A stretch of 64,000 bases of DNA from Piromyces finnis finn. Taxonomy: Eukaryota; Fungi; Neocallimastigomycota. The notes beneath the pieces are model-generated. The model searched no databases. It worked only from the letters and a program-made list of their open reading frames with translations, and had not been told where the DNA came from. This document shows, piece after piece, positions 2,572 through 54,781 of this stretch. The stretch covers positions 496,001 through 560,000 of the forward strand of contig MCFH01000026.1 in assembly GCA_002104945.1 (NCBI GenBank), read 5' to 3'. Each line of letters begins with the position of its first letter. The stretch's first letter is position 1. Made by a program: the position numbers and the translations under genes.

Positions 2572-3927
2572 TTTTTTTTTATATATAATTTTATTTAATA
2601 ATAATAAAAAAGAAAAAAAACAAAATAGATAAAGAAAAGATATATTTTAACTTTATAAACCAACTCTATTTAAATGAAGATTAGCCATAAAGTAAAAAAT
2701 AAACTATAATCTTTTATCTTTTATAAATAAAATAAAAAAAATAAAATAAAATAAAATAAATAAGCCTAAATATTTAGAAAAAAAAAAAAAATCAAGACAA
2801 TGTATCATTAGAAATACATATTATATATATTATATATAATTATAATTATATCTATTTATTATATATTTATTATTCAACTATAGAGTTTCTTAAGTGTGTC
2901 ATTATTAATGTATAAAAAAGAAAGAAAAAAAATACAAATTAACTAATGGTTACTTTTTTTTTTATTTCCCCAAAAAAAAAAAAATAATCTATTTATTATT
3001 TAAATAGAAATATTATTTTATTCCTTCCTTTTTTTTTTTTTTAAGACTATGGAAATTAAGACCATGATGATGATGTTTTTTTTTTTTTTTTTTTTTTATA
3101 ATTAGTTTAATTTGTATTGATCATCCATATAATGTATATTAATTCTCTTCTACGATCTTTTTTTTTTTTTTTTTTTTCCCTCCTCCTAAATTTTAATAAG
3201 CACAATATACTATATGGACGACAACAATCGACAAAATTATTTATACCTATAAAAAAAGAAAATGAAATTCCCCCTTTCTTTTCTTTTTTTTTTTTTTTTT
3301 TTTTTTTCTTTTGTTTTGTTATTTCTATTATTATGAATAATTATTTTAATATATATATATATATGTATATTTTATTCTCATTTTAATAAATAGCCTTTTT
3401 TTTTTTGATGTTATTATTTAGATTTAGATTCTTGAGGAGGTGGTGGTGTTGGTTGATAATGATACCATTAAAAATCGTTTTGTAGTGGTGTTGATGGTGG
3501 ATCATAAAAAATAATAACATACCAATGAAAAAAATAAAAAAAATTTTTTTTATCCTTCCTCTTTTTTTTATTTTTATTTTTATTTTTATTTAAATATTAT
3601 AATTTATTAAATCCTTCATTTTTTTTTTTTTTTTTTTTTATGATGATGAGAATGATGTTTTTTTTTTTTTAATTTTTTTATTTTTAAAATTATGTATATA
3701 TATTTTTTATGTAATAGGATATAAATATTATTTTTAATTTTTATCTTTGTTTATTATAAACTAATAATAATAAAAAAATAAAAAAAAAAAAGATGAAATT
3801 ATTATTACTTTACTATATAATATATATAATATATATATATAAAATATTATTATTTTTTTTTTTTTTAAATATATATATATATATATATATTGGAAAATGA
3901 CTTTTATATATATATATAAAATTGTGG

Positions 3928-7100: not shown

Positions 7101-8170
7101 TTTTTTTTTAATAAAACAAGCATTAAAATATATATGAATTGGTGATGGTCCATTTATTTCATAAAAAAAAATACCCTTCTCTTGGGGGTCCAAGTCCGGC
7201 CCCTCTAAAAGAAGGAGTATCTTTTCTAGATCATAAATTAATGTAATATTTTTTCCAATATTTACTAAAATTACTTACTTGATTGTTCTTCCTTCACAGA
7301 GTGTACCATCTACAGCAATGATAGCTTTTGTTGCATCTTCTTTTTTGGCATAAGTAATATAAATACTGATATTGGTGCTAGTTCCTTGTGGGGTATTATG
7401 TATTTTTTTGTTAATGACTACTTTGGTGATTTTACCATATTTACCAAAATATTCATATTGTCTTAATGTCTTTTTTTTTTTAAAAAAAAAAATTTGTAAT
7501 ATTTATAATTTTTTTTTTAAATATTAAAAGAATGACCATTAGTTTTTTCTTTTTAATAAATAAATTTGTTCATTAATACTAGAGAATATATATATACCTC
7601 TTCTGTTGCCAATTTAGCTGGAATACCAATAACATAAACCAAATTCTTTTGAACTACTCTTACATTGGACAAATGTTTTCTAGCATTTTGTTCTTGTTCT
7701 TTTCTTTCACGTTCCTTTGCCCTTTTTTTAGCTTTTATTTCTTGTAGTCTAACATTTTAATTTTATTTATAATTTTAGGCATTAATACGGGCAAATATTA
7801 TAAATTTTTAATAATTGTTTATTATTTCTAGGTATACTTACTCTTCTTGAGGTATAGGAGTAAATTCTACTGTTTCTTTTGAATATGGTCTTCTACATGC
7901 TGGACAGAGTCCATTGCATTCTTCTAAAATATGATTCCAGCAAAATCTACAAATCTTTTTTTTATTTATTTTTATTTTTTATTGTTATTTAACGACAATA
8001 GATTTATTAATATCACTTTTTATTTTATTTTTGTGAAAATAAATATTTTAAAATAATAAATATACCTGATATCCACAAGCACATGGTTTAAAATTTCTAT
8101 CTGCTAAATCAATTTCTTCCATACAAAGAGGACATACTAATTCCTCGTCTTCTGATAAATAAGATGACAT
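4105..8170 (-). CDS. NOT4: CCR4-NOT E3 ubiquitin ligase NOT4/MOT2 (multi-exon)
   Basis: Spliced reading gives RING CPLCMEEIDLADRNFKPCACGYQICRFCWNHILEECNGLCPACRRPY, RRM VRVVQKNLVYVIG...EYFGKYGKI, CCCH finger ASYGTTKYC...CQNPNCMYLHE, a low-complexity tail (ORFs 5751-6494 and 4485-5366) and a last exon with FQDPAIMAVR. Introns are GT-AG. Confidence 0.95.
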
Positions 8171-9720
8171 TCTGTTTAATAGAAATTTTATTAAAAATTA
8201 GGATAACATTAATGATAACGTTAATAATAATAATATTATTATTATTATTGGTTAATTAATTATACAACTATATATAAATCTATATATAAAGAAAAATATA
8301 TAACAACAGCAACAGTAATTAACAAATATTATTATATTAGAATGAATATTTTTATTTATTTTTTTTGAAGCAGGTATTGTTTATGATCCATCAAATCTAA
8401 TTTATTTATTTAATTTTTTTGAATATATGTTAAATGCTATTTTTTTTTTTACAATATATACACTTTTTATACTCATTTTATCATATTTATCCATATTTAA
8501 ACCATAACACTATTGCTATTATTATGCTAGTGCCTTATTTTGATTAATTGCTTTTGTTAGTATAATTCATTCTATGGATAAATTATATTATTTACAAGTC
8601 TTTTCAAAGAAGTGTTTTTTTAAACTAGATATAACTTTATCAATTTATTTCATAAACCCTTCCCCCTACAAAACTACTGGAAAAAAAGTTTTTGTTTTTA
8701 TTTATAAGAAATATTTTGAATAATATATTTTGTGTAATATATATATTTTGTTATATTATCCAACTTTTTCTTTCACTTTTCTTTTTCGTTTTTTTTTTTT
8801 TCCACAATATATATATATATTTTTTATTTTCTACTTTAAACAACTATTTATAGTATATTGATTTATCATATTTTAAATTATATATTTTGTTAAAAAGATA
8901 TAAAAAATACAATATTTAATTAACATTTACTTCCTATTAAATCGGTAAAGGTTTTTTTTTTTTTTTTTTTTAAATACTTAAATAAGTTTTATTATTATAT
9001 ATATATATATTTTTGAAAAAAATAAAAAATGTATTTGAAATAGCTTTTTTTTTTTCTTCTTCTTCTTTTATTATATCTTTTTCTTTTAATAAAAAGGTTT
9101 AGTTCATTCTAAGTGTGGTGGTGTTTGATTATATTGAAATTATATGAATAAATATGAATAGAATAATATATAATTTTTTCTTTCTTTTCTATTTTTCTTT
9201 CTTTATTTTTATTTTATAATATAATTTAATTTATATATATATTTTTAAATATATATTTTTTTATTTTTAATTTTATTTTATTTTTATTTTTTTTTTTTTA
9301 TTTGTTGCAATCGTTGATGAATGTTTCTATTGAAAGGTTTGATGACATTGAATATTTTTTTTTCTTATTTTTTTTTTTCTTATTTTCTTTTTATGTTTAT
9401 TATTATTTTTTTTTTCCCTTTAATAATAAAAAAGAAGAAAAAGATACAATATTATCCTTTTTTTTTTATTTTCTTTTTTATAGTACAATTATACAAAAAT
9501 AACAATAACAATAACAACAGCAAAAAAAAAAAAAAAGTCCTATAACCGTTTTATTTTTTTTTTTTTTTTTTTAAAAGCCAACAAAAAAAATATTTTAATA
9601 ATAATAATAAAAAAAAAAATGAATAAAAAAAAATAAAAAAATAAAAAAAAAATTATATTTAAATATTAAAATTTTTAAAGAATTTTAAACTCTTTTTTAT
9701 TTATTAAAAAAAGTCCAAAA

Positions 9721-9759
<39 letters not shown>

Positions 9760-10823
9760 TGCTTTTTTTGCAAAAAAAGAAAAATAAAAAAAATAAAAAA
9801 AATAAAAAAACAATAATAATTAATAGAATAGTTTAAATAATTATTATTTCTTTATTTTATTTTCAATGTTTTATTATTCTTTTTATATTTCAATTCTTCC
9901 TAATTAAAAGAGTTAAAAATTCAAACTTTGAATATTTTATTTTAAAATTTATAATACCTTTTTTTTAAAAAAAAAATGAAGTTAAAATTATTTTATTGTT
10001 TCCTTTATATTAGAAATAATAAAGAATGCTTTGAATATCTTGAATATCTTGAATGAGGAATTATACATTTTGAATCCTAATAATAATAATAATAATAATA
10101 TTATGGGTAACAGCTTCATATGGAAATTTTATATTCATTAAGAATTAGAATAACCTAAGCAATGTTATTATCTTATAAATAAAAAAAAAAAAGTATTTAA
10201 TAAAAAAAAAAAAAAACCCAATTAGAATTAATTATTAAGGCATACTAGAATAATATCTATAGATAAATTTGCTTTACAAGGTATTAATTAAAATAGAAAT
10301 GCTTTTTTTTTTTTTTTTTTTTCATTTTGAATCAGTTCACTAATAAAGAAATAACACCCCCCCAAAAAAAAAAAAAAAAAAAAAAAACTTGAATAACTTA
10401 ATAATAGAGAGGAAAACACAAAATTAATAAACGTAGAAAAAAAAACTGTTTTTTTACCATTTTCTATTCCTTTTAAAGTTATTATTTGCTTTTAATTTAG
10501 GCTTTATTAATTTCAATTTTTTTTTTTTTTTCTTTTTTTTTAAATAGAAAATAATAAATTTTATGCGATGATATAGTCTATATTTATTTACATAATAATT
10601 TATTATTACTTAATTTTTTTTTTTTTTCGAATAAAAAAATAAACTTAAAATGGTTAACGTCTATTACTTATTCATGACTATGTAACTAATAAAAAAAATA
10701 TTATTTCAGTAAAAAAAAAAGAAGTATATATATTCTATTGTGATTCCTTTTTTTCTTTTTAAAAAATATATATAAAACCTTTTTATCTTTGTGTGTTATC
10801 TGCGTTGTTTTTTTTTTTTTTTT

Positions 10824-13658
10824 TTATGCCATATACAATGATTGTATTCTTCTTCTACGTTCCTGTCGATTGTTTAAACAATTCATTGGTATAGCACCCC
10901 ATTTATTTGTTGATAAATTACTAGAGATAAATATTAAAAAAAATAAAGAATTAAAAATTTTAATATTTTATATTCAATAATAAAAAAAAGGTTTAAGAAA
11001 TAGGAGAAATGATGTAGGATGCGTTTTTTTTTTATTATTATTATTAAATACTTACGTTCCAACACACCATCCATCTTCAAATACTTTTTCAACTTCAAAG
11101 ACATGTCCATGTTTAACTGTAACTTCATCATTAAGAACTTGTTCATATTCTTTAATAATTTCATATCGACTTCCTTCACGAATTTCATTATTTTCTTCTC
11201 TTCTTCTTCTTGATCTGTCACGCTCATGCTTATGCTCTTCTTTGGTATTGTATCGTTGTTCCCATTCGGATTCTTTATTATCTCTTCTTTTTCTGTCTCT
11301 TGATCTTTCATCTCTTCTTCGATCACCTCCTCTGTCTCTTGATCTTTCATCCCTTCTTCGATCACCTCCTCTATCTCTTGATCTTTCATCTCTTCTTCTT
11401 TCTCTTTCTCTTGCTTTTTCTCTTTCTTTTTGTCTTCTTTGACGCTTTTCTCTTTCAATTCTTTTTTCTTCTTCTTTTTCAAGTCTTTCTTTTTCTTCTT
11501 TTTCTTTCTTTTCTCTTTCAAGTCTTACCTTTTCTTCTTTTTCTTTTCTGGCTTTTTCTTCCATTTCTTTTTTATGTTCTTCGGTTTCACATTTAATAAG
11601 GGGTATATTCATGGATTCACATTTGTGATTTTCTACTTCTTCAATTGGTATATCTTTTTTACATATTTTACATTTAATGGTAAAATGATTCATGGTGAAG
11701 TCGTCTTCTTCATCTCCAGAAGCATCAGAAGCATTTTCTTCAATTTCAAACATGGAAACAAATTTAGGATTACCTACCATTGACATACTCTTACTTATTG
11801 ACATGCTACTCTTATTCAAATAGGTTTCTAATTCTTCTCTTGAACTAATATTTCCAGGATGTAATTCCTTTTCTTCGATTTCATCATCACTATTATCATC
11901 ATCGTAATTATTTCTGTCATGATCATTTCTGTATCTGTCCCTTTCTCTTTCTCTTCTATCTCTATTTCTGCTTCTATCTCTCTGTCTATCTCTTTCTCTA
12001 TCTCTTCTGTTTCTTTCTCTTAATCTTTCTCTTTCTCTTTCCCTTATTCTTTCTCTGTTTCTTTCTCTCTCACTTTTTTCACGAGCTTCTTGACCTCTTC
12101 TGGAAGCAAAACTTCTATCAAAGGTACTACTTCTATTAGTTGATTCGTTAAATTGCTTTAATGGTGACATTGGTGATTTTGGTTTTGAACTAGATAATGT
12201 ATTATACTTGATACTTTCATCAAAGTCTTCTGGATTTATATTATCTCTTGAATAGTAGTCATTATCATAACGATTATTGACCGGTGTTTCATTTTTCATT
12301 CTTCTTAAACTATTATAATTAACATTGTTGTTCATACTTTGTCTAGTATTTAAGAATGGTGCTTTATCGGTTGTTGGAAGCATATCATAATTGTTATAAT
12401 TATCATTTCTTTTATTGTAATCTAGACTATTAAAGTAATTATTATTGTTAGGTATAATTGTAATTCCTGGATCACCACCATCTATATCTGAATTATTAAT
12501 CGTAATGACTTCTGATGCAAATCTAGTCTTTTTCTTTGAACTGCTGTAGATAGATACTGTCTTTGAATCTCTATATACGTTTCCATATTCATCTGTTTGC
12601 TTTATATTTTGTTTTAATGGTACAAAACATGCTAAAATCGCCCCCAATACCTTTTATAATTAAAATTTTTAATGAAAAGGTTATTAACTAATATAAAAAT
12701 AATTGGGTATAAAAATGTCTTTTTTTTGATAGAATAAAAAAAAAATTATGGATGATTTATATGATTTTTACCATAAACACCATTAATCCAATATATAAAT
12801 AAAATGATAGGGAAGGTATTGCACTTGTATTATTTTTATAGTTATTTATAGCACTTCTTCCAATAATTAGATTATCTAGTGATTCTAGTATATGAAATAT
12901 TCCAAAAATATCCAAGAATAAAAATACAGTAATAATTAACCATAGTACTACAGTTATGATATACTAAATGCCGTGATTTTATTATTGTATTGCAATTCAA
13001 TTATTTATACAATTGGATAATAGTTTGAATGTTTTGTATTATGAATTATTTTACAGTGAAAATTTTTAAAAGATTATTTTTATAATTAAAAAATATAATA
13101 TTGAATGTTTTGTATTATGAATTATTTTACAGTGAAAATTTTTAAAAGATTATTTTTATAATTAAAAAATATAATGTTAGTCAATCATACAATTATTTAA
13201 AAATAAATAATAAAAAAAAGAAATATTATTTATGAAAATAAAATAAAAAATTAATGCTTAATTATTTAAAAATAAATAATAAAAAAATGAAATATGATTT
13301 ATGAAAATAAAATAAAAAAATAATGCTTATAAAATATTAAAGAATAACATATCGCCTTTTTAAAAAAAGTTAATAGTAATTTACATATAACAATTAAACA
13401 AATATTCTTTATTCAATTTATCATATATTTAAACAGTAGTAATACAACTATACTAGATTTTAAACTTACCATATAAAGATATTTTAATTTCTTTGACCAA
13501 AATATCATCAATGCTATTAATAGTGATAAAAATATTAGTGCACTCAATATACCCATACTTAAAAATGCACCATCTTTTGAAAGTATGGCTACTACTGTAC
13601 CTGCAAAACCAGTTTGCAGTATTAATGTAAATATAAATAAAGTTTTAGCTATTGCCAT
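10824..13658 (-). CDS. Four-transmembrane protein with long charged tail and C-terminal SH3 domain (Sho1-like architecture)
   Basis: Exons 13470-13658, 12772-12963, 11056-12650 and 10824-10920 join in frame through GT-AG introns. There are four hydrophobic segments, and SH3 YEIIKEYEQVLNDEVTV...EDGWCVGTNLSTNKWGAIPMNCL is completed by the last exon. Confidence 0.85.
13025..13329. repeat. Two adjacent local tandem duplications (76 bp x2 and ~70 bp x2) in intron 1
   Basis: ttgaatgttttgtattatg... starts at 13025 and 13101; attatttaaaaataaataat... starts at ~13192 and 13261. Confidence 0.85.
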
Positions 13659-25853: not shown

Positions 25854-28800
25854 TTTTTTTTTTTTTTTTTTTTTTTTTAACGGCATCAAATATTTTAAAC
25901 TTTATTATTAATTTAATTAAAATTATAATACATGTAATATAAAAATTAAAATAAAATAAAAATAAAAAAAATATGTTTAAATAAACACAAATGAATAAAA
26001 ATTGGGTATAATGTATTCTAGTAATTTTAATTAAAGTAAGAAAGCCACTATCATACTAAAGTATAATAATTGTATTTGACTTCCAATGGGACACCGAGCC
26101 AAAGATCAAAATTTTGTCATGGAACAAAATTATGATCTCCATTGGTTGCGCTGGCCCTCCTGGCCTGTCTTACTGTTTCTTCAGCATTGACGCTCTTGGA
26201 TGTTGCTTCAAACCTTTTGAACATTGTCCATTGCTGGCCAATAGCAAAAGGCATGATTTTGGTTAGAAGTTCCGCGGTTACCGTCAAGAATGGTGTTCCT
26301 TCGTTAGTATCAGATTGAATCTGACGCTTACAAAGTTCTTTCCATTCCCTTGAATTGTAATTAATATTGTTAAAACTTCTTCCCCCAAGAAGGAATTTAA
26401 ATATTTCACTGCACACACTAGAATAATCATACACATTAATATTCACCGGATTATTAGAACTATTACTATCATTAACTAAATTACTATCTAAATTAGAATT
26501 ATTATCTTCACTATTGCTATCATTACTAATATTATTATTTCTATTACTACTATTGTTATTATTACTATTTCTATTACTACTATTGTTATTATTACTATTT
26601 CTATTACTACTATTGTTACTATTACTATTAATGTTATTACTATCTCTACTGATATTATCAATTTCATTATTATTGATAGGACTATTGGAATTACGTTGAC
26701 TGAAAAAATTTAATAGCTGGACTATAGAATCATAATGTTTAATACGGATATCTCTAAATGTTGGACAATCTAATAACCAATGTTTAATACTTTGATCTCC
26801 ACACTTGCAACATGGACAGTAGTTAGGACAAACTGGATCAACAAATTTGGCAGCTTTGGCAACTCTAGCATCCAACTTGTATCCGCTTCTTGCTTTCAAT
26901 AGCCAGTAGAAGCCATAGGCAAACTCTGGGTACTCATAACATAATTTAATAAAATCTTTAGTTTCAATAAATTTATTATCATCATAATATTGCGCTTTGA
27001 TTGAATTCCCTTTGAGATCTTTCCAATAAAAGTTTTTAACTGCTTTAACATCTCCATGCTTCTTTAGTTTTTTTTCAAGTGTCCTACTTGATTTGCACCA
27101 CGTGTATTTTCTAAATTTAGGAATGTAATTGACAAGGTGTGAGATAATACAATTTGAGTTTTTCCATTTGTTAAAACATCTAACCTGAGCTAACGCACAT
27201 TTGGCTGACAATGGAGGAATATTCAAATCTTTTGAAATAGAATATAAAGATATAAACGATACAGCTTTATGAACTCCGGCAACCCATCGTATTCCTTTGT
27301 TAACATGCTTCTGAGCAATCCTAGACCTAGCTTTGTTGGATCCAAGTAATGGTGCAAAGTATGAAACTCTGCTAATCACTTGTGAGTTAAGTACTAGTTT
27401 TTTGAAAGGAATAGGAATATTAGGATTTCTTAAGAATTTACTGACTGAGAAAAGTCCTTTCAAAACCTTGTTATTAAGAGCTTTAATTACTGATTTAAGG
27501 GACAGATTCTTATCAAATGGAACACCAAGATAAGTATAACAATCAGTAGTTGGAATGGGTTGTCCTGCTAAGTAAAATGTTGGATCTCTCTTGTTCTGAT
27601 TTTCTATTGATTCAGGACGAATCACCATCGTTGAACATTTCTGGATACCAAATTCCATTTCATTATACAATGCCCATTCATTAACTCTTCTAAGCATCTT
27701 TTTTAAGCATCCTCTTGTTGGAGCACAAATAACTATATCATCTGCAAAAAGTCCACCACAGCATCGAGTGTCACCTAAACTGACTCCTAGATCTTCGCAC
27801 TCTTTAAATATATCATTAATAAAGAGATTAAAGAGAATAGGAGAAAGAGGGCATCCTTGACGGACTCCTTTCTTCACATCAAAAGATTTCGAGAATTGTC
27901 CATCTAATTTGACATTAGCCTTAGATGTTAAATATAAATTTTTGATGAATTGTAAACTCTTACCTCGGATTCCTAAACAATCTAATTTATGGAGAATATT
28001 ACCGATTGGGACTGAATCGTATGCTTTCTTGAGATCTAAAAAGGCCAAATATGTCTCTTTATTATCTAATTGACGTCTACGGCATATTTCTTGGATTGAA
28101 ATGAAAAGACTGATACTTTCTTCCTTTTTTCGAAAACCAAATTGTTCAGGTCTAATGAAATTATCCTTTAGACCATATTCTGAGATTCTAGTGGTGACAA
28201 TTTTGGAAATCAACTTAATACCATTATTGATAAGTGATATACCTCGATAGTTATCACAATCTGTCAAATCACCCTTCTTAGGAATAGAAACAATACTGGA
28301 TTCATTCCATGAGTTGGGGAAGTCTCCATCCCAAATACGGTTGAATAATTTAAGAATAAAATTTAACCCATGAGCATCATTATCTGAAGTAGTATTACCA
28401 GAAGAATTATTACCTGTAGCATTATTAGAATCATTACTTGATGGAATTAATGCTTTGTAAAATTCAATTGGAATACCATCCGGACCTGATGCTTTATAAT
28501 TTGGAGTAGAGAGGATAGCTGACTTGACTTCATCAATACTAATATCTTGGTTGATATCCCATTCATCAAGCATAGGAAGTGAAAAACGTTTATTCGTTGG
28601 TTCTTCATACCAATGCTCTAGATCAAGACTTACACCACTTGGATCTGATGCAAGGTTTTCGAAATGATCATGCCACACATCTAGTTGTTCTTCCGTAGCA
28701 ACAACTAATTCTCCATTTTTATTTTTAATTGGTTGAGCAATAAAGAAAGAATCTTTTCCAATTTTTGCAGTTTTCTTGATCCATTTCCAGGCCTTCTTAG

Positions 28801-31544
28801 GATTATGACTCTTCATATACTCACATCCTGTTTTAATCCAATGAAGATATTCTTGCTTCCTAAATTCATTACATCTTTTGTGGATGTAATCAATGAGCTT
28901 ACGGTAGATTTTAATTCTTTTAATAAATTCATCTATATCATAAATTCTTTCTTTTTTAAATCTCTTATACAACTTCATTTTGATTTTTTGAAGATTAAAA
29001 ATTTGTTGTGAAATATGAAATGAAGACTTTATAACATTATTTGCTGAGGTAATACTGAGCTCGTCTGCAATTGAAAAAGCAGTTGAAGTAAACTCTTTGG
29101 AAAGTTCATCTGTAGAAACATTAGGATCGTTGAATTTTGCTGAAAGTATTTGGAATTTATTATGACTGAGAATAGATTCCTTTTCCTCAGTACATTTTAA
29201 TCTATTCCATTTCAGAATTTTCTTAGGAACATTAAAGTCATTAGAAAAATCTTCCATAGGAATAATTTTACCATTAATAAGAAGTGGCTTATGGTCTGAT
29301 ACAGGATAAAAATTATTTATAAATGATCCTGAGTGAATAAGATCTTTCATCTTCGAATTGATAAGAGCATGGTCAATGTCGGAAGATTGATCACCTCGAG
29401 TCCAAGAGATAGTCGACCCTCTAAGCGGAAGAATTTCCCAATCTCCTAATCCATTAGTTGATAACCAGTTGGATAATTTTACTTTAGACATATTAAAATC
29501 ACCAACAAGAATCGATGGATGGGATGAATGAGTTTGTAACCACAAGCGAACTTCTAACTTTGCATGATCAACATAGATGTTGCGATGACTATGAGGCATA
29601 TAAACATTTCCAATCGAGCATTTGAATCTGTTCCAGAGACTAAAAGTATAAATAGAAATAATATACTTTCCAGAGAAGTTTTCAAGTGAGGCTTGACACG
29701 AATTGTGAAAACCTAAATATAAACCTCTCATTCCCGGAACTGATTCATCAGCTTTCTTGAAAAAGTGTCTATAGTTTCGCAAAGTAACACGACAAGGATA
29801 ATCTGTATTCGATCCAGAACCATTACCAGTTTCTTGGAAACATAAAAATAATGGTTTGAAAATAGCTGTGAAATAGCTAATACTATCTCTCTTTTCGTGA
29901 TTCCACCCATTGGTGTTCCAACTAAAACAAAAAGAAAAGTTATCAGGCTTGTTGGATGAGGAAGAATCGTTGCTATTATTATTATTATTAAAGTCATCGT
30001 TATTAATGGATGATGCATCAGAGGAATAAGTAGAACTATTACTAGATGGCTGTGAAACTGAAGAACTATCAACTATTGAACTTTTATCAGAGTTGATAGA
30101 ACTATTAGAATTAATTGTTGAATGTTGAGATTGAAATTGTGTTTGCTGTAGATCTGGAATATTTTCATGATGGGAAACTTGTTGAAGATCTTGTTGTTGA
30201 AGATCGGATTGTTGATGAGATTATTGAACTGATTGTTGAAATGATTGTTGAATAGAATGTTGATGTTTATTAGAAACTAAAATTTTACGTTTGAGAGTGG
30301 AAAAAGTATATTTGTGATTCCTTCTACTACGAGCTGAAAAGGAAATTGAGGTAACTGAAAGTTTCTTCTTTAACATGTGTAAGATTTTAATACAATCTTT
30401 TGATGAACCATGAACCTTGACTAAGAAAAAGTGATCATTGAAAGTCTGAAAATATTTAACACTAATAACTGAATTAAATTTATCTTCTAGAATAACCTCG
30501 AGTTTTTCCCATAGCATATTTACTGACCATGATCGAATACCACGGATAAAGAAGGAGCGAATATCATCTAAGGGGATACCATAAGACCGGGTACCACGTC
30601 TGATATAATTCTTATCTTTAATATAAAGGACTGACATGATAATAAATTCTAATTAAAAAATATTGAATATAAAATAAATACTAATAAAAATTACAAATAT
30701 AACGTATATGGAAAAAAATCTGTCTCTCTCTCTCTTCTTAAAAGTGCTGGATAGTACAAAAATTGTTACGATGCTTTGTTTAAAGTTTCTTTTTTTTTTT
30801 TTTTTTTTTTTTGAATTCTAGTTGTAAATTTTCTTTAAAAATTCTAGTTTTGGTTTGTTGTTAGTAAATTCAATTCGCTTTTTGACACTAAAATTGTTTG
30901 ACTTTACTTTTCATTAAATATTTAAATTGGTAAAAAATTTGAATCAAGAATGTCGACACCAGAAAGCTTGTGAATAGTATTTTTACATGATGTAGAGTGA
31001 ATCAGTCTCTTACAAGAAACAATTCAACAATAGCTACATGAATATAAAAATACAATGCAAATGCTAAAGTTGACTACATTGGATTCTTACAAGAGAAGAG
31101 TAGTACTACATGAATACATGAATAAAAGAAAAAAATACAGCAACAAAATGTATTACTCTTCTAATTAAATACTATACAAACTTACCTGAGTATCAAACAT
31201 TCACTTATTCATCAAATACTTAAATTCGATGAATAAAATGTTTTTTAATCGCTCAGTACCATGAGCTTAGTCCTAATAATTTTCCCTTAAAGACTAACCA
31301 AGCATCCATTGCGCAATACTTGGATTTAATTCTTTCTACTCTCTCAGTACCATGAGCATGAGTAGACTCCCTTGATAAACTACGTTTATTAAATAAATGA
31401 AGGCACGTTTCCAAGAGGGCACCAAGCATCCATTGCGCAATACTTGGATTTAATTCTTTCTACTCTCTCAGTACCATGAGCATGAGTAGACCCCCTTGAG
31501 AAACTACATTTATTAAATAAATGAAGGCACGTTTCCAAGAGGGC
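25854..31544 (-). mobile_element. Full-length LINE family A (APE-RT non-LTR retrotransposon, ~5.7 kb)
   Basis: Poly(A) at 25854-25878. 37-bp TSD ataaagagtagaaaggaataaaagaacaaagagaata at 25817-25853 and 31545-31581. Tandem 5' monomers. Confidence 0.95.
26117..30637 (-). CDS. Single-frame LINE polyprotein (~1506 codons: RRM-like N-terminus, Q/S/N linker, APE, RT, CCHC-type knuckle) with one in-frame TAA at 30221-30223
   Basis: ORFs 30221-30637 and 26117-29782 are in the same frame, and the gap reads open (SWNTNGW, CFQETG). RT motifs: KASGPDG, YRGISL, QFGFR, DLKKAYD, GVRQGCPLSP, LFADD. Knuckle: CPCC..SIKHWLLDC. Confidence 0.9.
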
Positions 31545-32301: not shown

Positions 32302-34461
32302 TTAAAGGAAACGACGACGCATGAATTCTTCACGTCTTCCTGGACTCCAAGCACTTACAGAGGTAAAGTAACCAACAATACGAGTGATATGATCAATTAT
32401 TGGTTCTGAACATATTGGACAAGTAGTAGCATTACCACTTATAGTAATATGTTTTTGAGTACAAGAATTGTAAGAATAATTAATAGCAAAATGTTCACAA
32501 TGATTTTTTATAGCGTATTTAACAACAGCTTGCATTTGTGATGCAGATTGCATACGATCAGCTAAATTGATATGAGTAATACAACCACCACTCATATATT
32601 TAGCCAAGTCACCATCAATCTTTATTCTTTCTTCTAAAGAAATATCAGTCCAAAGTGGAACAAATTGGTTAGCATAAATTTCATATTGCATATCATTAAC
32701 TAACATATCCTTCTTAGCATGTTTAATGGCCAAGGATTCACCTGGAACTTGTTCAACATTGAATAAAATCTTGTTTTTAATATCACACTTATCGTTAGCA
32801 TAATCAGTAATGTGCTTTAAGATACGACGAGAGAGTTCAATACCATCTTCCTTTAACATATCATAACCCATTTCATTTAAACCTTCGTAGAGACCGTTAA
32901 TACCAAAGGTTAAGAAGAATCTTTCCAAGAACATGTAACCTAATTCGTCCTTAAAGAATGGACAAGCACCTCTTTCCATTTGTTTAACAATGAAAGCACG
33001 GTGAGCTAATAACATATAGTAAGCCTTTTCAAGTTGAGCATCTAAATGTTCAAAGAAAACATCAATAGCTTTTTCCTTATCTTGTTCCTTAGAAGCGTAG
33101 TAACCCATTCTAGCTAAATTAAGAGTAACGATTCTTAAACTACCAATGTTAACACCACCTTCACCAAAGACACTCATGTGAACATTTAAGTTGTTGATAA
33201 CACGGCAGCAGGAAGCAAGTTTGTTAGAGTCACTAACAAAGAAGTTGAAAAGACCATTCATATTAATTTCACAAAAGTATTCAAAGGTTTCTTGATCCAT
33301 AACTTCCTTATCATCGTTAACCTTTAAGTTTAAGGTGACAACTGGGAATGGATATGGAAGGAAAGATTCAGTAGATTGACCACGAGCAAACCAATTACAG
33401 AAAATCTTTTGTAATTCCATAACTAAATCGAGATTTGGTTGAGAACCATCTGGATAATAAACAGTTCCAAACAAGTGTTCAAGACTTGGTTTATCAAAAA
33501 TGGAAATGTTAGTGAAAGCACTTTGACAAGAGAAACGATGAGCACAATTTAAAATGTGAACAAGACTTTGATAATCGTTTTCGATTTCTTCAACCTTTTC
33601 TTTATTGTTAACAACAGTTTCAATACCTTCTAATTGAAGGTAGTAAGCGTAGTAAACAAAAAGATCAGCAACAGCAATAGCACCAGCTAATTCTTGAGAC
33701 ATACTAGTAACAGTTTCAGCAACTTGACCAATGAAACTTCTAGTGTGTTTTGGAGGAAGAGAACGAAGTTGACGGTTAAAAGTGATACCTTGAGTTACAA
33801 CAGGTTCAACAGACATAGCATAACAGTATGGAACAAAAAGGTAGCAAGAATCATGTAAATAAATATCACCGTTAATCCAAGCACGGAACATATCAACAGT
33901 CTTTTCACCACCATAAATACTTTTAACATGACTAAAGAATTGGGAAACATTAGCCAACTTTTGATATGGAGCAACAATTTCACGAATTTCCTTTGAATGG
34001 AATTTGTAAGTACCGATAGCGCCGTTAGCATTAGCATCGATACTGTGATCAGAACCATAATTCATTACATCAGTAAAGTTTGTGTTGATATCTAAAATTT
34101 CTAAACCTAAACCTTCCAATTTAAGTAATTTTCTCCAAATTTCATCTGGAGTTTTACCAGTTGGATCATGTTGTAAGAGTTCGTAGAAATCAGCATCAAT
34201 AGAAAGAGAAACACTAGTAGTAGTATAATCTGGGTTAATTATATCTGGAACTTCAGTAGCATCAGAAAGGTTAGTGTGGTCAGAACCAATAGTTCCTTGA
34301 GAAACTTCAGTATTTTCAGAAACTTCAGTGTTTTCGGATTCTGAAAAGGCGTCTTCATTTAAAGTACATTTTTTATCTAATTGTTCTTCAATTTCTCTTA
34401 TTTTCTTATCTTGAACAAACTTGTTAATTGGATCATTAATAATATCGTATTGAGTAGTCAT
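32302..34461 (-). CDS. nrdD: Class III (anaerobic, glycyl-radical) ribonucleoside-triphosphate reductase
   Basis: 719 aa, intronless. Motifs: YLHDS..VPYC, AGAIAVAD, PFPVVTLN, ASCCR, NIGSLRIVTLNLAR, LTFGINGLYE, NVEQVPGES, GGCITHIN and C-terminal C..KH..CPIC..ITRIVGYF (glycyl-radical loop). Confidence 0.95.
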   Translation of the reverse strand: MTTQYDIINDPINKFVQDKKIREIEEQLDKKCTLNEDAFSESENTEVSENTEVSQGTIGSDHTNLSDATEVPDIINPDYTTTSVSLSIDADFYELLQHDPTGKTPDEIWRKLLKLEGLGLEILDINTNFTDVMNYGSDHSIDANANGAIGTYKFHSKEIREIVAPYQKLANVSQFFSHVKSIYGGEKTVDMFRAWINGDIYLHDSCYLFVPYCYAMSVEPVVTQGITFNRQLRSLPPKHTRSFIGQVAETVTSMSQELAGAIAVADLFVYYAYYLQLEGIETVVNNKEKVEEIENDYQSLVHILNCAHRFSCQSAFTNISIFDKPSLEHLFGTVYYPDGSQPNLDLVMELQKIFCNWFARGQSTESFLPYPFPVVTLNLKVNDDKEVMDQETFEYFCEINMNGLFNFFVSDSNKLASCCRVINNLNVHMSVFGEGGVNIGSLRIVTLNLARMGYYASKEQDKEKAIDVFFEHLDAQLEKAYYMLLAHRAFIVKQMERGACPFFKDELGYMFLERFFLTFGINGLYEGLNEMGYDMLKEDGIELSRRILKHITDYANDKCDIKNKILFNVEQVPGESLAIKHAKKDMLVNDMQYEIYANQFVPLWTDISLEERIKIDGDLAKYMSGGCITHINLADRMQSASQMQAVVKYAIKNHCEHFAINYSYNSCTQKHITISGNATTCPICSEPIIDHITRIVGYFTSVSAWSPGRREEFMRRRFL

Positions 34462-35361
34462 TTTTAAATAATTTTTATTTTGTTTTGTTTAATGTTTAAC
34501 TTTTTTTCTAAATTGAAATGAATAAAAAATAGTAAATTTCGTAAAAGATTTCTTTTTTATTTTATTGGTATAAGCTGTTTTTGTTTTTTAAAAAAAGATG
34601 GTTAAAATCTAAAAAATAAAAAAAAAAGAATTGAGAAATAAAAAAGAAATAAATTTTTTAATAATTTTTTAAATCAACTTTTGCTAAAACTTTTGTAATA
34701 AAAAAAAGTGAAAAAATGGGAATTTTCGTTTTTTTTATACTTTTTCATTTTTTATTTACAATTTTTTATTTACAAGTTTGAGGAATGAATAATCCTATTT
34801 TCATTATACTCTAATATATAGGAACAATTAAAATTTTAAATTGAATGTCATATATTATTTTTTTATATTAAAATTTAAAAAAAATTTTTTTGTTGTCTGT
34901 TCAAAAAAAAAACCATTTTATAATAAAAAAAATGAATTTGAAATCAGGCTCAAATTCTGGTAAATTTCATGAATTTTAAAAAATCTTCAGGCAAAGATAA
35001 AATTTCGATACTTTGCCACCACATTTTTTGATAATAAAATCGATTAATCATTTTTAATACAATAGCTAATGAAAGGGGATTGTATATATTACTGTACATT
35101 GTAATATATTTTAAATTTTAATTTGATAATTTTTTATAGGTACATAAATTTATGTAAATTAAAAAATTTTGATTATACTCATAATATATTGTATAATATA
35201 TTATTCAATTTAAATTTTAATTAATATAAATTTAAAAAAATAATTAAATTTATTTTTGTTTTTTTGTTGTCCTTCGCTAAACCATTAAAAATGTTTATAT
35301 ATGGTTCAATTTAATTTTTGAATTGAATCCTATATTAGAGTCAATTGTACTTTTAAAATAA

Positions 35362-35362
<1 letters not shown>

Positions 35363-35392
<30 letters not shown>

Positions 35393-35922
35393 TTCCGAGT
35401 GCATTTCTCCCATCGATCAGAGTTAGCTCCAATGGTGGTTCTTAGAGAAACGTTGGCTCATTCCTATTGCTAGGTGGTTGTGACCTCCTGGTCTGTCATA
35501 CTGTTTCTTCAGCTTCGACGCTCACTTAATCCATGTACATTAGATGCATGTCGTTGTACGATATTTCACAACTACAATGCTAAGCCTCTTATAGTCAATT
35601 TGATCACGTGTCAACCGCCCCTAATGTTTACACTTAAATTGATTAAGGAATATTATGTGTTTTTGGCATAGCCTAAGTCACCACTTATTAAGTTCTAATT
35701 TGGAATGTACCATGTACACTAGACCCTCTCAGGCCGGCTAGACGAGTGTTATTATCATAGTAGTAAATTAGAAAGTTCATTTATACTTACCTGAATATCA
35801 TAACCCAACCATGGCAAACCCAGTGGGAAAATCCACAGGCACTGACATCTGCGGGGTCGAACCAGAAGCCTTATGTATGCTAAGGAAACGCCTTAACAAC
35901 CAGGATAAAAACTGGAACGACC
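35363..35922 (-). mobile_element. tRNA-derived SINE, full-length copy 2
   Basis: Identical to 574-1110 apart from three 1-nt indels in C runs. T run 35363-35389. 13-bp TSD cttttaaaataaa at 35350-35362 and 35922-35934. Confidence 0.9.
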
Positions 35923-46760: not shown

Positions 46761-48629
46761 ATGTCCACTACTTTATATTTTATTTTATTTTTTATTTTAT
46801 TCATTACTTTTTGTTTTAGTAGTAGCACTATGATTTATAAAACTTTTTTTAAAAATTTAAAGAGAAATCAATTTGAATATTTAAACTTTAATGGTTTAAA
46901 ATATTCAGAAATTAAATATATTATTAAAGTTACCTACTTGTTTTATAAAATGAAAGAGATGAAAAGAAATGACATTAAAAATAAATTCTTTTTATCTTTT
47001 CAAAACAAATTTAAGATAAGTATGAAAAAGCAAATTAATAATATATATTTAATTAAAAAATTTCAAAATTTAGAGGATTCTTATTCCTTAAAACATATGA
47101 AATTAAGGAAAGGAATTCAAAGAATAAAAAATAAAGAAAATAATTCTTTAAATAATAAAGAATATTTTCATTTAATTAAAAAAACTAAAGATAAGCATTT
47201 AATTCGAAAATCGTCGAAAAAATGCTTATTTAATATTAAAGATTTTATTACAAAAAAGGATATTAAAAACAATCAGAAAATATTCCTTGAATTTTGTAAT
47301 AATAAATATAGTTATATTAATTATAACTTTTTGAATAATAATGATCCAATTGTTGATTCCTTGGATCAAATTAAAGAAGAAAAAGAAGAAATAAGTTATG
47401 AAGAAAATGGTAATTATACCATTTTTAATATTCCTAATAATGAAAAAGTCGAAAAAGAAGAAGATATAAAAGAAGATATGAATGAAGAAAAGGTCGATAA
47501 AAAAGAATATGATAATGATGAAGAAATTGAAGAAATAAATGAAGAAATTGAAGAAATAAATGAAGAAATTGGAGATGATGGTACCATTATTTATGTTCCG
47601 GATGAAGAAGTTGATAAAGATAATGAAAGAGATGTCATACAAATTATTTTATCTCTTTTCAAAGATCGAATCAATGAAAAAGAAGAAGATGATGATAATG
47701 GAAAAGAAGAAGAAGAAGAAAAAGAAGAAAAAGAAGAAAAAGAGTATGATGGTGATGAAGAACAATCTAATGAAAATAATTATCTTGGAATTATTTCACA
47801 TGAATCAAAATCAAATGATCAAAGTATGGAAGAAGAAAGTAATAAATCATTAATTTTATTTTCAGAAGAAGAAGAAGAAGAAGAAGAAGAAAGAAAAGAA
47901 AAAGAAAGAAATGATGTAATGGAAGAAAGTGTTAATAATATTATTCCATTTTCTTTAAGTGATCAAATCGTTAAAGATGATGATAGAATTACAGCATTAT
48001 TTCAGTCACATCAAAACAACAATAACAACTACATTAATGAAGATGACAATAGTACAATTATTTTGAGTTCTGGAGAAGAAGAAGAAGAAGAAGAAGAAGA
48101 AAAAGAAGAAGATGAAAATGAAAAAGAAACATTTGAAAAAGAAGAAACAGAAGAAGAAGATTTTGAAGAAAAAATGAAAAGGAATACTTTTAATGAATTG
48201 GAATATTATTATACGAGTCCAATTGATTATACACCTTCCATTGAAAATATCGAAAACTTGCAAGAAAGAGTTAATCTATTAAATTGTAAACTAAAATTAT
48301 CCCAATATATATTACCGAATCTTGACAAGAAAAAGTATTTTATGAGGTTGACAGAAATTCAAGAAGCTATTATTTATATCAGATCAATTTACAGAAGGAA
48401 GAATAAGAAGATCCAAAAGTTAAAGAAAGAGACTGAAACAAATGCATTAGCAAGAAAGAGCACCAGAACTATAGGAAGAAAAGCCAAGAAAGTAGAAGTT
48501 CAAAGTTTAATTAATATAAATAAAATTAAAGCAAAGGAAGAAAAAAAATCTACCATAGATTTAATAATTAATAATATGAAAAGTTTAAAATTAAACAAGC
48601 AACGAAACATATTAAAAAATGAAATATAA
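46761..48629 (+). CDS. Orphan protein, basic-acidic-basic, copy 1
   Basis: 622-aa stop-free frame in very AT-rich DNA, preserved in all three units. No family recognised. Confidence 0.6.
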   Translation: MSTTLYFILFFILFITFCFSSSTMIYKTFFKNLKRNQFEYLNFNGLKYSEIKYIIKVTYLFYKMKEMKRNDIKNKFFLSFQNKFKISMKKQINNIYLIKKFQNLEDSYSLKHMKLRKGIQRIKNKENNSLNNKEYFHLIKKTKDKHLIRKSSKKCLFNIKDFITKKDIKNNQKIFLEFCNNKYSYINYNFLNNNDPIVDSLDQIKEEKEEISYEENGNYTIFNIPNNEKVEKEEDIKEDMNEEKVDKKEYDNDEEIEEINEEIEEINEEIGDDGTIIYVPDEEVDKDNERDVIQIILSLFKDRINEKEEDDDNGKEEEEEKEEKEEKEYDGDEEQSNENNYLGIISHESKSNDQSMEEESNKSLILFSEEEEEEEEERKEKERNDVMEESVNNIIPFSLSDQIVKDDDRITALFQSHQNNNNNYINEDDNSTIILSSGEEEEEEEEEKEEDENEKETFEKEETEEEDFEEKMKRNTFNELEYYYTSPIDYTPSIENIENLQERVNLLNCKLKLSQYILPNLDKKKYFMRLTEIQEAIIYIRSIYRRKNKKIQKLKKETETNALARKSTRTIGRKAKKVEVQSLININKIKAKEEKKSTIDLIINNMKSLKLNKQRNILKNEI

Positions 48630-52912: not shown

Positions 52913-54781
52913 ATGTCTACTACTTTATATTTTATTTTATTTTTTATTTTATTCATTACTTTTTGTTTTAGTAGTAGCACTATGATTTATAGAAATTTTT
53001 TTAGAAGTTTAAAGAGAAATCAATTTGAATATTTAAACTTTAATGGTTTAAAATATTCAGAAATTAAATATATTATTAAAGTTGCTTACTTGTTTTATAA
53101 AATGAAAGAGATGAAAAGAAATGACATTAACAATAAATTCTTTTCATCTTTTCAAAACAAATTTAAGATAAGTATGAAAAAACAAATTAATAATATATAT
53201 TTAATTAAAAAATTTCAAAATTTAGAGGATTCTTATTCCTTAAAACATATGAAATTAAGGAAAGGAATTCAAAGAATAAAAAATAAAGAAAATAATTCTT
53301 TAAATAATAAAGAATATTTTCATTTAATTAAAAAAACTAAAGATAAGCATTTAATTCGAAAATCGTCGAAAAAATGCTTATTTAATATTAAAGATTTTAT
53401 TACAAAGAAGGATATTAAAAACAATCAGAAAATATTCCTTGAATTTTGTAATAATAAATATAGTTATATTAATTATAACTTTTTGAATAATAATGATCCA
53501 ATTGTTGATTCCTTGGATCAAATTAAAGAAGAAAAAGAAGAAATAAGTTATGAAGAAAATGGTAATTATACCATTTTTAATATTCCTAATAATGAAAAAG
53601 TCGAAAAAGAAGAAAATATAAAAGAAGATATGAATGAAGAAAAGGTCGATAAAAAAGAATATGATAATGATGAAGAAATTGAAGAAATAAATGAAGAAAT
53701 TGAAGAAATGAATGAAGAAATTGGTGATGATGGTACCATTATTTATGTTCCGGATGAAGAAGTTGATAAAGATAATGAAAGAGATGTTATACAAATTATT
53801 TTATCTCTTTTCAAAGATCGAATCAATGAAAAAGAAGGAGAAGATGAAAATGAAAATGATGATAGTGGAAAAGAAGAAGAAAAAGAAGAAGAAGAAAAAG
53901 AGTATGATGGTGATGAAGAACAATCTAATGAAAATAATTATCTTGGAATTATTTCACATGAATCAAAATCAAATGATCAAAGTATGGAAGAAGAAAGTAA
54001 TAAATCATTAATTTTATTTTCAGAAGAAGAAGAAGAAGAAGAAGAAGAAAGAAAAGAAAAAGAAGAAAAAGAAAGAAATGATGTAATGGAAGAAAGTGTT
54101 AATAATATTATTCAATTTTCTTTAAGTGATCAAATCGTTAAAGATGATGATAGAATTACAGCATTATTTCAGTCAAATCAAAACAACAATAACAACTACA
54201 TTAATGAAGATGACAATAGTACAATTATTTTGAGTTCTGGAGAAGAAGAAGAAGAAGAAGAAGAAGAAAAAGAAGAAGAAACATTTAAAAAAGAAGAAAC
54301 TGAAGAAGAAGATTTTGAAGAAAAAATGAAAAGAAATACTTTTAATGAATTGGAACATTATTATATGAGTCCAATTGATTATACACCTTCCATTGAAAAT
54401 ATCGAAAACTTGCAAGAAAGAGTTAATCTATTAAATTGTAAACTAAAATTATCCCAATATATATTACCGAATCTTGACAAGAAAAAGTATTTTATGAGGT
54501 TGACAGAAATTCAAGAAGCTATTATTTATATCAGATCAATTTACAGAAGGAAGAATAAGAAGATCCAAAAGTTAAAGAAAGAGACTGAAACAAATGCATT
54601 AGCAAGAAAGAGCACCAGAACTATAGGAAGAAAAGCCAAGAAAGTAGAAGTTCAAAGTTTAATTAATATAAATAAAATTAAAGCAAAGGAAGAAAAAAAA
54701 TCTACCATAGATTTAATAATTAATAATATGAAAAGTTTAAAATTAAATAAACAACAAAACATATTAAAAAATGAAATATAA
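52913..54781 (+). CDS. Orphan protein, copy 2
   Basis: 622 aa; differs from copy 1 by substitutions and in-frame indels only. Confidence 0.6.
   Translation: MSTTLYFILFFILFITFCFSSSTMIYRNFFRSLKRNQFEYLNFNGLKYSEIKYIIKVAYLFYKMKEMKRNDINNKFFSSFQNKFKISMKKQINNIYLIKKFQNLEDSYSLKHMKLRKGIQRIKNKENNSLNNKEYFHLIKKTKDKHLIRKSSKKCLFNIKDFITKKDIKNNQKIFLEFCNNKYSYINYNFLNNNDPIVDSLDQIKEEKEEISYEENGNYTIFNIPNNEKVEKEENIKEDMNEEKVDKKEYDNDEEIEEINEEIEEMNEEIGDDGTIIYVPDEEVDKDNERDVIQIILSLFKDRINEKEGEDENENDDSGKEEEKEEEEKEYDGDEEQSNENNYLGIISHESKSNDQSMEEESNKSLILFSEEEEEEEEERKEKEEKERNDVMEESVNNIIQFSLSDQIVKDDDRITALFQSNQNNNNNYINEDDNSTIILSSGEEEEEEEEEKEEETFKKEETEEEDFEEKMKRNTFNELEHYYMSPIDYTPSIENIENLQERVNLLNCKLKLSQYILPNLDKKKYFMRLTEIQEAIIYIRSIYRRKNKKIQKLKKETETNALARKSTRTIGRKAKKVEVQSLININKIKAKEEKKSTIDLIINNMKSLKLNKQQNILKNEI

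Follow-up and report, generated by a model that had tools for sequence, protein, structure and literature searches.

How does a strictly anaerobic fungus make its DNA precursors? Ribonucleotide reduction is their sole de novo source, and a strict anaerobe must replace the usual eukaryotic ribonucleotide reductase (RNR) because that enzyme needs O2. The question is raised by a long open reading frame of Piromyces finnis (Table 1) located in a 64-kb stretch of contig C152 (C152:496001-560000, hereafter the window), on a contig that extends over at least 560 kb. We are highly confident that this frame encodes a functional nuclear class III reductase (NrdD), probably of the thioredoxin type; it would derive from a Dependentiae-type nrdG-nrdD operon, the nrdD of which was triplicated and the nrdG of which was separated to contig C211, and would belong to the only route to dNTPs.

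The first-pass annotation had proposed an intact, intronless nrdD with A/T-ending codons and AT-rich flanks, embedded among host retroelements, and nearly all of this description stood. The gene is a single frame of 719 codons, and in alignments its product follows bacterial NrdD without any break in frame, beginning near residue 93 and continuing through the final residue; the coding region is thus without an intron, a statement that covers the coding region and leaves room for an intron in a UTR. The Pfam family NRDD (PF13597) matched residues 190-717 with an E-value of 6.8e-85 (286.3 bits for a gathering cut-off of 26.2), and this match covered profile positions 33-560 of 562. When the frame was compared with NCBIfam, the best eight matches were all NrdD models. 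The scores remained below the equivalog cut-offs (517.8 versus 545 bits for NF006127 and 367 versus 568.3 for TIGR02827), the protein belonging to a divergent eukaryotic branch of the family. The gene sits in DNA of 15-33% GC, its flanks having 18-27% (positions 34462-35461 being included in the count) and the window as a whole 21.9%. The codon bias itself is real, with a GC3 of 0.22 and 78% of the codons ending in A or T, but its value as evidence for a host gene was lost: the nrdD genes of Dependentiae have a GC3 of 0.13-0.40, so A/T-ending codons cannot tell host from donor, and we rejected the bias as a sign of domestication since the donor phylum shows the same one. The LINE-type frame found near nrdD shows, as for it, a host genomic setting.

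Table 1. Features of the nrdD locus, in window coordinates
Feature	Position	Strand	Basis
NrdD coding sequence, 719 aa + stop	32302..34461	-	Uninterrupted ATG-to-stop ORF; Pfam NRDD, NCBIfam
Acidic N-terminal extension, aa 1-92	34186..34461	-	Alignments A1, A2; 21 D/E versus 6 K/R; SENTEVSENTEVS repeat
Tyr212-Cys213	33823..33828	-	Equivalent to T. maritima Tyr124-Cys125 (4coi alignment); invariant in alignment A1
SCCR motif, aa 417-420	33202..33213	-	Equivalent to T. maritima 328-SCCR-331; T4 NrdD has MGCR there
Glu570 in FNVEQVP, candidate active-site Glu	32752..32754	-	Invariant in A1; aligned to T. maritima FNIEQVP
C-terminal metal-site residues C667-x3-H671 ... C681-x2-C684	32410..32463	-	Columns conserved in A1; same pattern in T. 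maritima NrdD
Glycyl-radical motif RIVGY, aa 694-698	32368..32382	-	Gly697 aligns with T. maritima Gly621
LINE-type ORF, 1221 aa, reverse-transcriptase domain	26117..29782	-	Pfam RVT_1, E 8.8e-36; downstream of nrdD

We then looked at the residues on which catalysis would depend. Cys213 aligns with the conserved active-site cysteine of the family, Cys79 in T4 NrdD and Cys125 in Thermotoga maritima NrdD, and RIVGY corresponds to the RxxGY that class III enzymes require. In the T. maritima enzyme Cys125 is the bottom-face active-site cysteine and the Tyr that precedes it marks subclass NrdDh; SCCR occurs only in NrdDh, and the C329A and C330A mutants are inactive (PMC4493059). With S417-C418-C419-R420 and Y212-C213, which are the residues of that definition, the P. 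finnis protein is, to judge from its sequence, an NrdDh, the T. maritima type of RNRdb2. No ATP-cone was detected in it. Wei and colleagues reportedly defined, in 2014, a redoxin-dependent type, NrdD2, with an active-site Glu; Glu570 occupies what we take to be the position of this defining residue, for which it is a candidate, and the third active-site cysteine of the type is found in Cys418 and Cys419 within SCCR.

The best solved relative is the T. maritima enzyme (4COI, 4U3E; NrdDh1), which was matched with an E-value of 1e-76 over everything downstream of roughly residue 90-110, the C-terminus included. Both proteins have the Tyr-Cys pair, SCCR, the Glu of FN(I/V)EQVP, the C...H...CxxC pattern and RIVGY, and neither has an ATP-cone, whereas the insert that follows SCCR in T. 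maritima is lacking in the fungal protein, and the acidic N-terminal extension of 92 residues and the nuclear location are fungal features. By analogy, the glycyl radical, the radical-SAM activase and the NTP substrates would be as in the NrdD-NrdG systems of E. coli and T4 (NrdD1, NrdDc); however, the match with T4 NrdD was weak (E 1e-5, C-terminal half only), and T4 MGCR and the ATP-cone of E. coli NrdD differ from what is found in P. finnis. The enzymatic activity of NrdD, like its compartment, is something that we infer.

Because the protein belongs to NrdDh (Tyr212-Cys213, SCCR, the candidate Glu570, no ATP-cone), the most likely electron source, by analogy with characterized members, is the pair of thioredoxin and its reductase, and not formate. 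The genome encodes an intron-split thioredoxin reductase and thioredoxins, which speaks for this choice in terms of reductant availability only. Formate, the reductant of E. coli and T4 NrdD, seems to us a rather unlikely substitute: gut fungi do produce it via PFL, and some JGI homologues were automatically named 'ribonucleoside-triphosphate reductase (formate)', but SCCR replaces the MGCR of T4, and the third Cys and, as a candidate, the conserved Glu are NrdD2 features. E. coli Trx is not accepted by T. maritima NrdD, the mechanism of which is debated (PMC4493059), yet that enzyme takes its electrons from a protein of more than 10 kDa, and the NrdDh of Neisseria bacilliformis (NrdDh3 / NrdD2), of the same subclass and likened to ours by motif only, uses thioredoxin (PMC4493059, PMC9176816).

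As for the activase, the annotation had seen no nrdG in the window and predicted either an unlinked one or cross-activation by a PFL-type activase. Indeed, no NrdG-like ORF was found there, and the first of the two predictions proved right: the sole NrdG-type match of the genome is a single-copy, intronless radical-SAM ORF of 198 aa on C211 (C211:1221939-1222535), exactly ORX56135.1, a protein annotated "hypothetical protein". It contains the N-terminal cluster motif CxxxCxxC, as CSIRCPDC, and GGEP, and it matched Fer4_12 with 63.1 bits (cut-off 22). Its top three NCBIfam matches were NrdG models, the PFL activating enzyme (PFL-AE) ranking lower. The scores lie below the NrdG equivalog cut-offs (68.5 versus 126.1 for TIGR02491, 66.1 versus 131 for TIGR02495 and 58.7 versus 151.7 for TIGR02826), as do those of the operon NrdGs of Dependentiae (84-90 bits). 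The protein is at least 90% identical between genera of gut fungi (AGF), the gene order zf-C2H2 - nrdG - 535/571-aa gene is repeated in four AGF assemblies, and in the three for which neighbours were listed no NRDD lay within 10 kb of nrdG. A third Fer4_12 match of the genome, on C35, was rejected as an activase; it belongs to the viperin family (NF038283, 240 bits for a cut-off of 180). [quoted passage not shown]

Where did the two genes come from? The transfer of nrdD into gut fungi, also proposed in the annotation as a horizontal acquisition, is already known: Murphy et al. 2019 (10.1101/487215, Fig. 5D) described the AGF NrdD as a Dependentiae-derived transfer, and NRDD is a Pfam family unique to AGF (Wang et al. 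2019, PMC6712302). Our data agree, as the nearest named bacterial homologues of NrdD are those of Dependentiae/Babeliales (42-46% identity), all the bacterial nrdD loci that we found (37/37) are from MAGs of Dependentiae/Babeliales type, and the eukaryote-type clade and the AGF clade of the NrdD tree each had an SH-aLRT support of 100. In each of the 37 loci nrdD is directly preceded by a homologue of nrdG, which shares its strand and ends 0-60 bp ahead of it, whereas the P. finnis genes are on different contigs. The bacterial operon proteins have the same motifs as the fungal ones, the NrdGs being 29-39% identical, but Dependentiae NrdD ends in a C-terminal tail with no counterpart in the fungal NrdDs. 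The nearest relatives outside the gut fungi are linked gene pairs on other eukaryote-like contigs: nrdG and nrdD share contigs in Quaeritorhiza, the ENA contig ptg000166l and an ERZ1426829 contig, which hold the closest non-AGF NrdDs, and nrdG adjoins nrdD in a chytrid contig. The NrdG tree, in which no bacterial outgroup outside Dependentiae is present save one long-branch row, mirrors the NrdD tree. It is likely from these sequences that nrdG and nrdD were acquired together and later separated. The bacterial operon would have reached zoosporic fungi at a time when the genera of gut fungi had yet to split; in P. finnis nrdD would then have been triplicated, and nrdG separated as the single intronless gene on C211.

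Since this dedicated NrdG-type gene exists, cross-activation by a PFL activase is unnecessary. A PFL-AE gene is present in the genome (C101), and the sub-cut-off scores of the C211 protein would suit a reading in which PFL-AE activates NrdD and the C211 gene has another role; we nevertheless hold this to be very unlikely in view of the ranking of the NrdG models, of the operon partnership in the Dependentiae loci and in chytrid-type contigs, and of the mirrored trees and the conservation of the protein among AGF genera. The activases of glycyl-radical enzymes are as a rule substrate-specific.

Three intact intronless NrdD paralogs are found in the P. finnis genome, the one studied here and two on C1, a contig of 2.6 Mb, where a paralog is identical to the P. 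finnis protein P0018, and orthologues are present on long contigs in the Anaeromyces and Neocallimastix assemblies; the gene is thus a eukaryotic nuclear one, as first annotated. The dN/dS of the C152 copy versus its orthologues ranged from 0.085 to 0.12, and shows purifying selection. ORX68860.1 from Anaeromyces falls in the 90% cluster of orthologue P0001, in a clade with a support of 97 in the NrdD tree, and the C152-type clade is therefore older than the Piromyces/Anaeromyces split. The 92-aa N-terminal extension is specific to this paralog type: it is missing from bacterial NrdD and from both C1 paralogs, and it is conserved in the alignments with orthologues P0001-P0003. A Pfam search with it gave no match, and the first 100 codons of the gene have a dN/dS of about 0.22-0.38 (NG86). 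The exact 719-aa protein was not found in public protein collections, so that in P. finnis the C152 copy must either lack an annotation or have received a different gene model. This absence, the existence of three paralogs and the 92 additional residues without a known domain could be taken as signs of redundancy or decay in the C152 copy, with the work left to the C1 paralogs. We find this highly improbable, for every catalytic residue is intact, the orthologues giving the low dN/dS carry the same extension, and the paralog clade predates the generic split.

The P. finnis genome seems to encode no RNR other than class III. Searches of this one assembly with four class I/II models (PF02867, PF00268, TIGR02506 and TIGR02504) gave 0 candidates, and as a control the same method recovered the intron-split thioredoxin reductase exon by exon, as well as the thioredoxins. 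PMC8085122 likewise reports neither a class II RNR nor a B12-independent alternative for Neocallimastigomycetes. As no class I/II RNR is detectable, dNTPs would be supplied by the three NrdD paralogs alone, in line with the earlier view that the class III enzyme lets an anaerobe make dNTPs. Class III RNRs are rare in eukaryotes (7 NrdD genes in 76 genomes; Lundin et al. 2015, PMC4390871), and those of other unicellular eukaryotes have a late horizontal origin, some being NrdD-NrdG fusions (PMC4390871); P. finnis differs from them in that its nrdD and nrdG are neither fused nor linked and no class I enzyme is found in its assembly.

The accounts of Murphy et al. 2019 and Wang et al. 2019 concern the same family, fungal phylum and donor phylum, with the same reading of dNTPs made without O2. 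They are without the NrdD subclass, the reductant, the loss of classes I and II, the three paralog lineages and the N-terminal extension; nrdG is not mentioned in the text and one supplement of 10.1101/487215 or in PMC6712302, and we found no literature on nrdG in anaerobic fungi within a limited collection of papers. What is new here is the dedicated unlinked activase on another contig and the lack of any other reductase class in the assembly. The picture becomes that of a complete system, with an apparently co-acquired activase, apparently the only RNR, and of a subclass for which thioredoxin is expected. These findings would be useful for metabolic models of gut fungi, and they bear on any effort to equip yeasts with anaerobic dNTP synthesis as well as on the date of the transfer. 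A broader scenario, which we offer only tentatively, is that nrdG-nrdD entered zoosporic fungi as an operon before the gut fungi radiated, or was passed from one chytrid lineage to another, and that the linked pair persists in Quaeritorhiza haematococci and on other GC-rich eukaryote-like contigs; gut fungi would have split the genes, lost class I RNR and come to rely on thioredoxin-type class III alone, one paralog lineage having gained the conserved acidic extension, which may replace ATP-cone regulation.

NrdD of AGF was identified in poly(A)-selected transcriptomes (Murphy et al. 2019, 10.1101/487215). That the frame is bacterial contamination or a chimeric assembly join is hardly conceivable: it is intronless and of bacterial type, and composition alone cannot decide the matter because the donor phylum is itself AT-rich, but the highest bacterial identity is just 42-46%, its contig also carries a LINE, two more paralogs are found on the 2.6-Mb one, orthologues occur on long contigs of two other genera, the A-rich context of the ATG and the flanks are typical of the host, the transcripts were poly(A)-selected, and one DNA run, possibly from the source sample, holds 91% of the words of the gene and its flanks. 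Expression of the C152 copy itself is indicated indirectly: in four runs from the same organism, presumed to be RNA, 58-65% of the words from a 4-kb stretch are present, and the CDS accounts for 54% of that stretch.

The nrdD gene of the window is real and was interpreted correctly, and its central point has already been published. New here are a putatively cognate, co-acquired yet unlinked NrdG activase annotated as hypothetical, an apparent sole dependence on class III ribonucleotide reductase (RNR), NrdDh (redoxin-type) features, a conserved, paralog-specific N-terminal extension, and nrdG-nrdD linkage in a non-gut chytrid and other eukaryote-like contigs.

The first-pass annotation had described an intact, intronless nrdD, and we recovered the ORF at identical coordinates. 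Pfam NRDD spans residues 190-717 of the product (E 6.8e-85), and all 8 NCBIfam matches are anaerobic RNR models, the top one (NF006127) scoring 517.8 bits, slightly below its curated cut-off of 545. The coding region contains no intron, given that its product aligns colinearly with bacterial NrdD from residue ~93 through the C-terminus. The GC content is 21.9% for the window, 33% for the ORF (GC3 0.22) and 18-27% for its flanks. The A/T-ending codons had been taken as a sign of domestication; this argument fails, given GC3 values of 0.13-0.40 for nrdD in the donor phylum itself. Compared with two orthologous sequences, the gene has dN/dS values of 0.085 and 0.12, rising to about 0.22-0.38 over the first 100 codons. 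Of the words sampled from a 4-kb stretch around the gene, 54% of which is CDS, 58-65% were present in four runs of this organism that were tentatively taken as RNA, and 91% in a DNA run. Elsewhere in the window, three plus-strand ORFs of 622-639 aa (46761-48629, 52913-54781 and 59002-60921) are spaced by about 6.1 kb, and a Pfam search with them gave no match.

Features of the nrdD and activase loci (C1, C35, C101 and C211 are P. finnis contigs; L handles are retrieved loci)
Feature	Location	Strand	Remarks
nrdD CDS, 719 aa	window 32302..34461	-	single ATG-to-stop ORF (ORF listing)
Acidic N-terminal extension, 92 aa, with SENTEVSENTEVS repeat	window 34186-34461	-	kept in orthologues from other gut-fungus sources
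ORF with reverse-transcriptase domain, 1221 aa	window 26117-29782		downstream of nrdD
Tyr212-Cys213	window NrdD		alignment
SCCR loop	window NrdD, residues 417-420		alignment
Glu570 in FNVEQVP	window NrdD		alignment
C667/H671/C681/C684 site	window NrdD		alignment
RIVGY with Gly697	window NrdD		alignment
Two intact intronless NrdD paralogs, 652 and 673 aa	C1:923555-925180 and 929368-930990		tandem, ~5.8 kb apart
NrdG-type ORF, 198 aa, intronless	C211:1221939-1222535		sole strong match genome-wide
PFL-AE gene	C101 (L005 1204-2440)		two AT-rich introns, unlike intronless nrdG and nrdD
Viperin-family radical-SAM gene, 310 aa, intronless	C35:456250-457182 (L050 1432-2364)		NF038283, 240 bits, above cut-off
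Quaeritorhiza nrdG HK102_002644	JADGJF010001677.1 (L007) 2866-3657	-	divergent neighbour of nrdD
Quaeritorhiza nrdD HK102_002643	JADGJF010001677.1 (L007) 4238-6127	+	divergent neighbour of nrdG
nrdD, ENA ERZ19610909	ptg000166l (L006, 678 kb) 8001-9929	+	2 kb from nrdG
nrdG, ENA ERZ19610909	ptg000166l (L006, 678 kb) 11905-12435	-	2 kb from nrdD

In the assembly (56.46 Mb, 232 contigs) the window corresponds to C152:496001-560000. NrdD is encoded there by three genes, all intact and intronless: the one in the window and the C1 tandem pair. The C1 paralogs are about 70-72% identical to window NrdD and devoid of its long N-terminal extension; one of them is identical to a known P. finnis protein (P0018). 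Window NrdD belongs to a distinct paralog lineage (tree support 97) whose members, 88-92% identical to it, have the extension in common, and the 90% cluster of this lineage also includes a protein from Anaeromyces. The extension had no Pfam match. A collection of 15 billion proteins lacks the exact 719-aa sequence, which suggests that the public P. finnis proteome either omits the window copy or contains it under another gene model. The assembly, searched in all six frames with PF02867 (class I/II large subunit), PF00268 (class I small subunit), TIGR02506 (NrdA/E) and TIGR02504 (NrdJ), yielded 0 candidates for each model; the same procedure recovers intron-split host genes, such as the thioredoxin reductase of contig C154 in five exon-sized pieces, and Neocallimastigomycetes were reported to have neither a class II RNR nor a B12-independent alternative (Orlowska et al., PMC8085122). 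On this evidence, the assembly appears to encode no RNR catalyst other than the three NrdD paralogs.

The nearest named bacterial relatives of window NrdD are Dependentiae/Babeliales (TM6; 42-46% identity), and when GTDB was scanned by pattern, with each species represented by a single genome, 37 nrdD loci emerged, all in Dependentiae-type MAGs, of which one is labelled Gracilibacteria and several carry generic labels. The likelihood tree unites all eukaryote-type sequences in a single long-stemmed clade (SH-aLRT 100); nested inside it, the gut fungi make up a sub-clade (100). The proposal of a horizontal acquisition serving an anaerobe is upheld and matches the published transfer: Murphy et al. 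(10.1101/487215), using poly(A)-selected transcriptomes and retaining only what occurred in over half of the assemblies for a genus, listed NrdD among HGT events, clustering with Dependentiae, and read it as an adaptation to anaerobiosis; Wang et al. (PMC6712302) listed NRDD among the Pfams unique to gut fungi. A Dependentiae-type nrdG-nrdD operon also occurs in MAGs titled 'uncultured Pseudomonadota bacterium' (L008, L009, L010, L020, L022, L026, L032, L035, L040 and L043). These titles may be generic labels, because the sequences interleave with TM6/Babeliales in both NrdD and NrdG trees.

An unlinked activase had been predicted, and a genome-wide search with two NrdG models and Fer4_12 bore this out, with an ORF on C211 whose homologues are NrdD-linked. 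It equals ORX56135.1 exactly, annotated as hypothetical, and carries CSIRCPDC cluster and GGEP motifs. Its top three NCBIfam models are three NrdG families, with PFL-AE lower and all below curated cut-offs, and its Fer4_12 score exceeds the cut-off. Two other Fer4_12 matches were rejected as NrdD activases, that on C101 being the pyruvate formate-lyase activase and that on C35 a viperin-family gene. The only detectable relatives of the C211 protein share contigs with the closest NrdDs from outside the gut fungi. In Dependentiae an nrdG homologue (29-39% identical, with a matching NCBIfam profile) immediately precedes nrdD, in the same orientation, in 37 of 37 loci. The NrdG tree mirrors that of NrdD, with support of 99 for gut fungi, 98 for these with their sister Quaeritorhiza, and 92 for all eukaryote-type sequences. 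Piromyces and Neocallimastix proteins are at least 90% identical, and the order zf-C2H2 gene, nrdG, 535/571-aa gene is kept in N. californiae, a second Neocallimastix assembly, Piromyces sp. E2 and P. finnis. Together, these sequence comparisons support the C211 gene as the probable cognate NrdD activase. No NRDD lies within 10 kb of nrdG in the three gut-fungus assemblies with neighbouring genes listed. The simplest history would be that both genes were acquired as an operon and separated before the gut-fungus genera diverged. We found no mention of nrdG in Murphy et al., Wang et al. or the wider literature searched.

The hallmark residues are all present in the alignments of window NrdD. Glu570 occupies what we take to be the position of the candidate NrdD2-defining Glu (cf. 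Wei et al. 2014). The closest solved structure is T. maritima NrdD (E 1e-76), the T4 NrdD match being weak. The NrdDh subclass is defined by an SCCR motif and a Tyr ahead of the conserved Cys (PMC4493059), both of which window NrdD bears. The characterised NrdDh of N. bacilliformis depends on thioredoxin (PMC4493059, PMC9176816); the reductant of T. maritima NrdD is also a protein (PMC4493059). In contrast, the NrdD1 enzymes of E. coli and T4 have MGCR and use formate (PMC4493059, PMC9176816). A Pfam domain search detected no ATP-cone in window NrdD, and the assembly encodes thioredoxins and thioredoxin reductase. On these grounds we propose that the C211 NrdG would install the glycyl radical on Gly697, that catalysis would run via the SCCR and Cys213 cysteines, and that thioredoxin would re-reduce the enzyme; judged from its motifs, thioredoxin is somewhat favoured over formate as the reductant.

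Linked nrdG-nrdD pairs also occur in a non-gut chytrid and in eukaryote-like contigs, and they prompt one to ask at what time the pair entered fungi and whether it did so more than once. Quaeritorhiza haematococci (Chytridiomycetes) encodes NrdG and NrdD proteins 55% and 58% identical to those of P. finnis, on a contig of 52% GC that also holds an intron-containing Metallophos gene. The eukaryote-like ptg000166l (50-58% GC) carries a LINE RT/endonuclease ORF, RING and DM9 genes, and an nrdD with a GC3 of 0.75. The two genes are likewise adjacent on a 33-kb contig of ENA ERZ1426829, among many orphan ORFs and genes for DHFR, a protein kinase and a PNKP-like kinase/phosphatase; a set of genes like this might belong to a compact eukaryote or to a giant virus.
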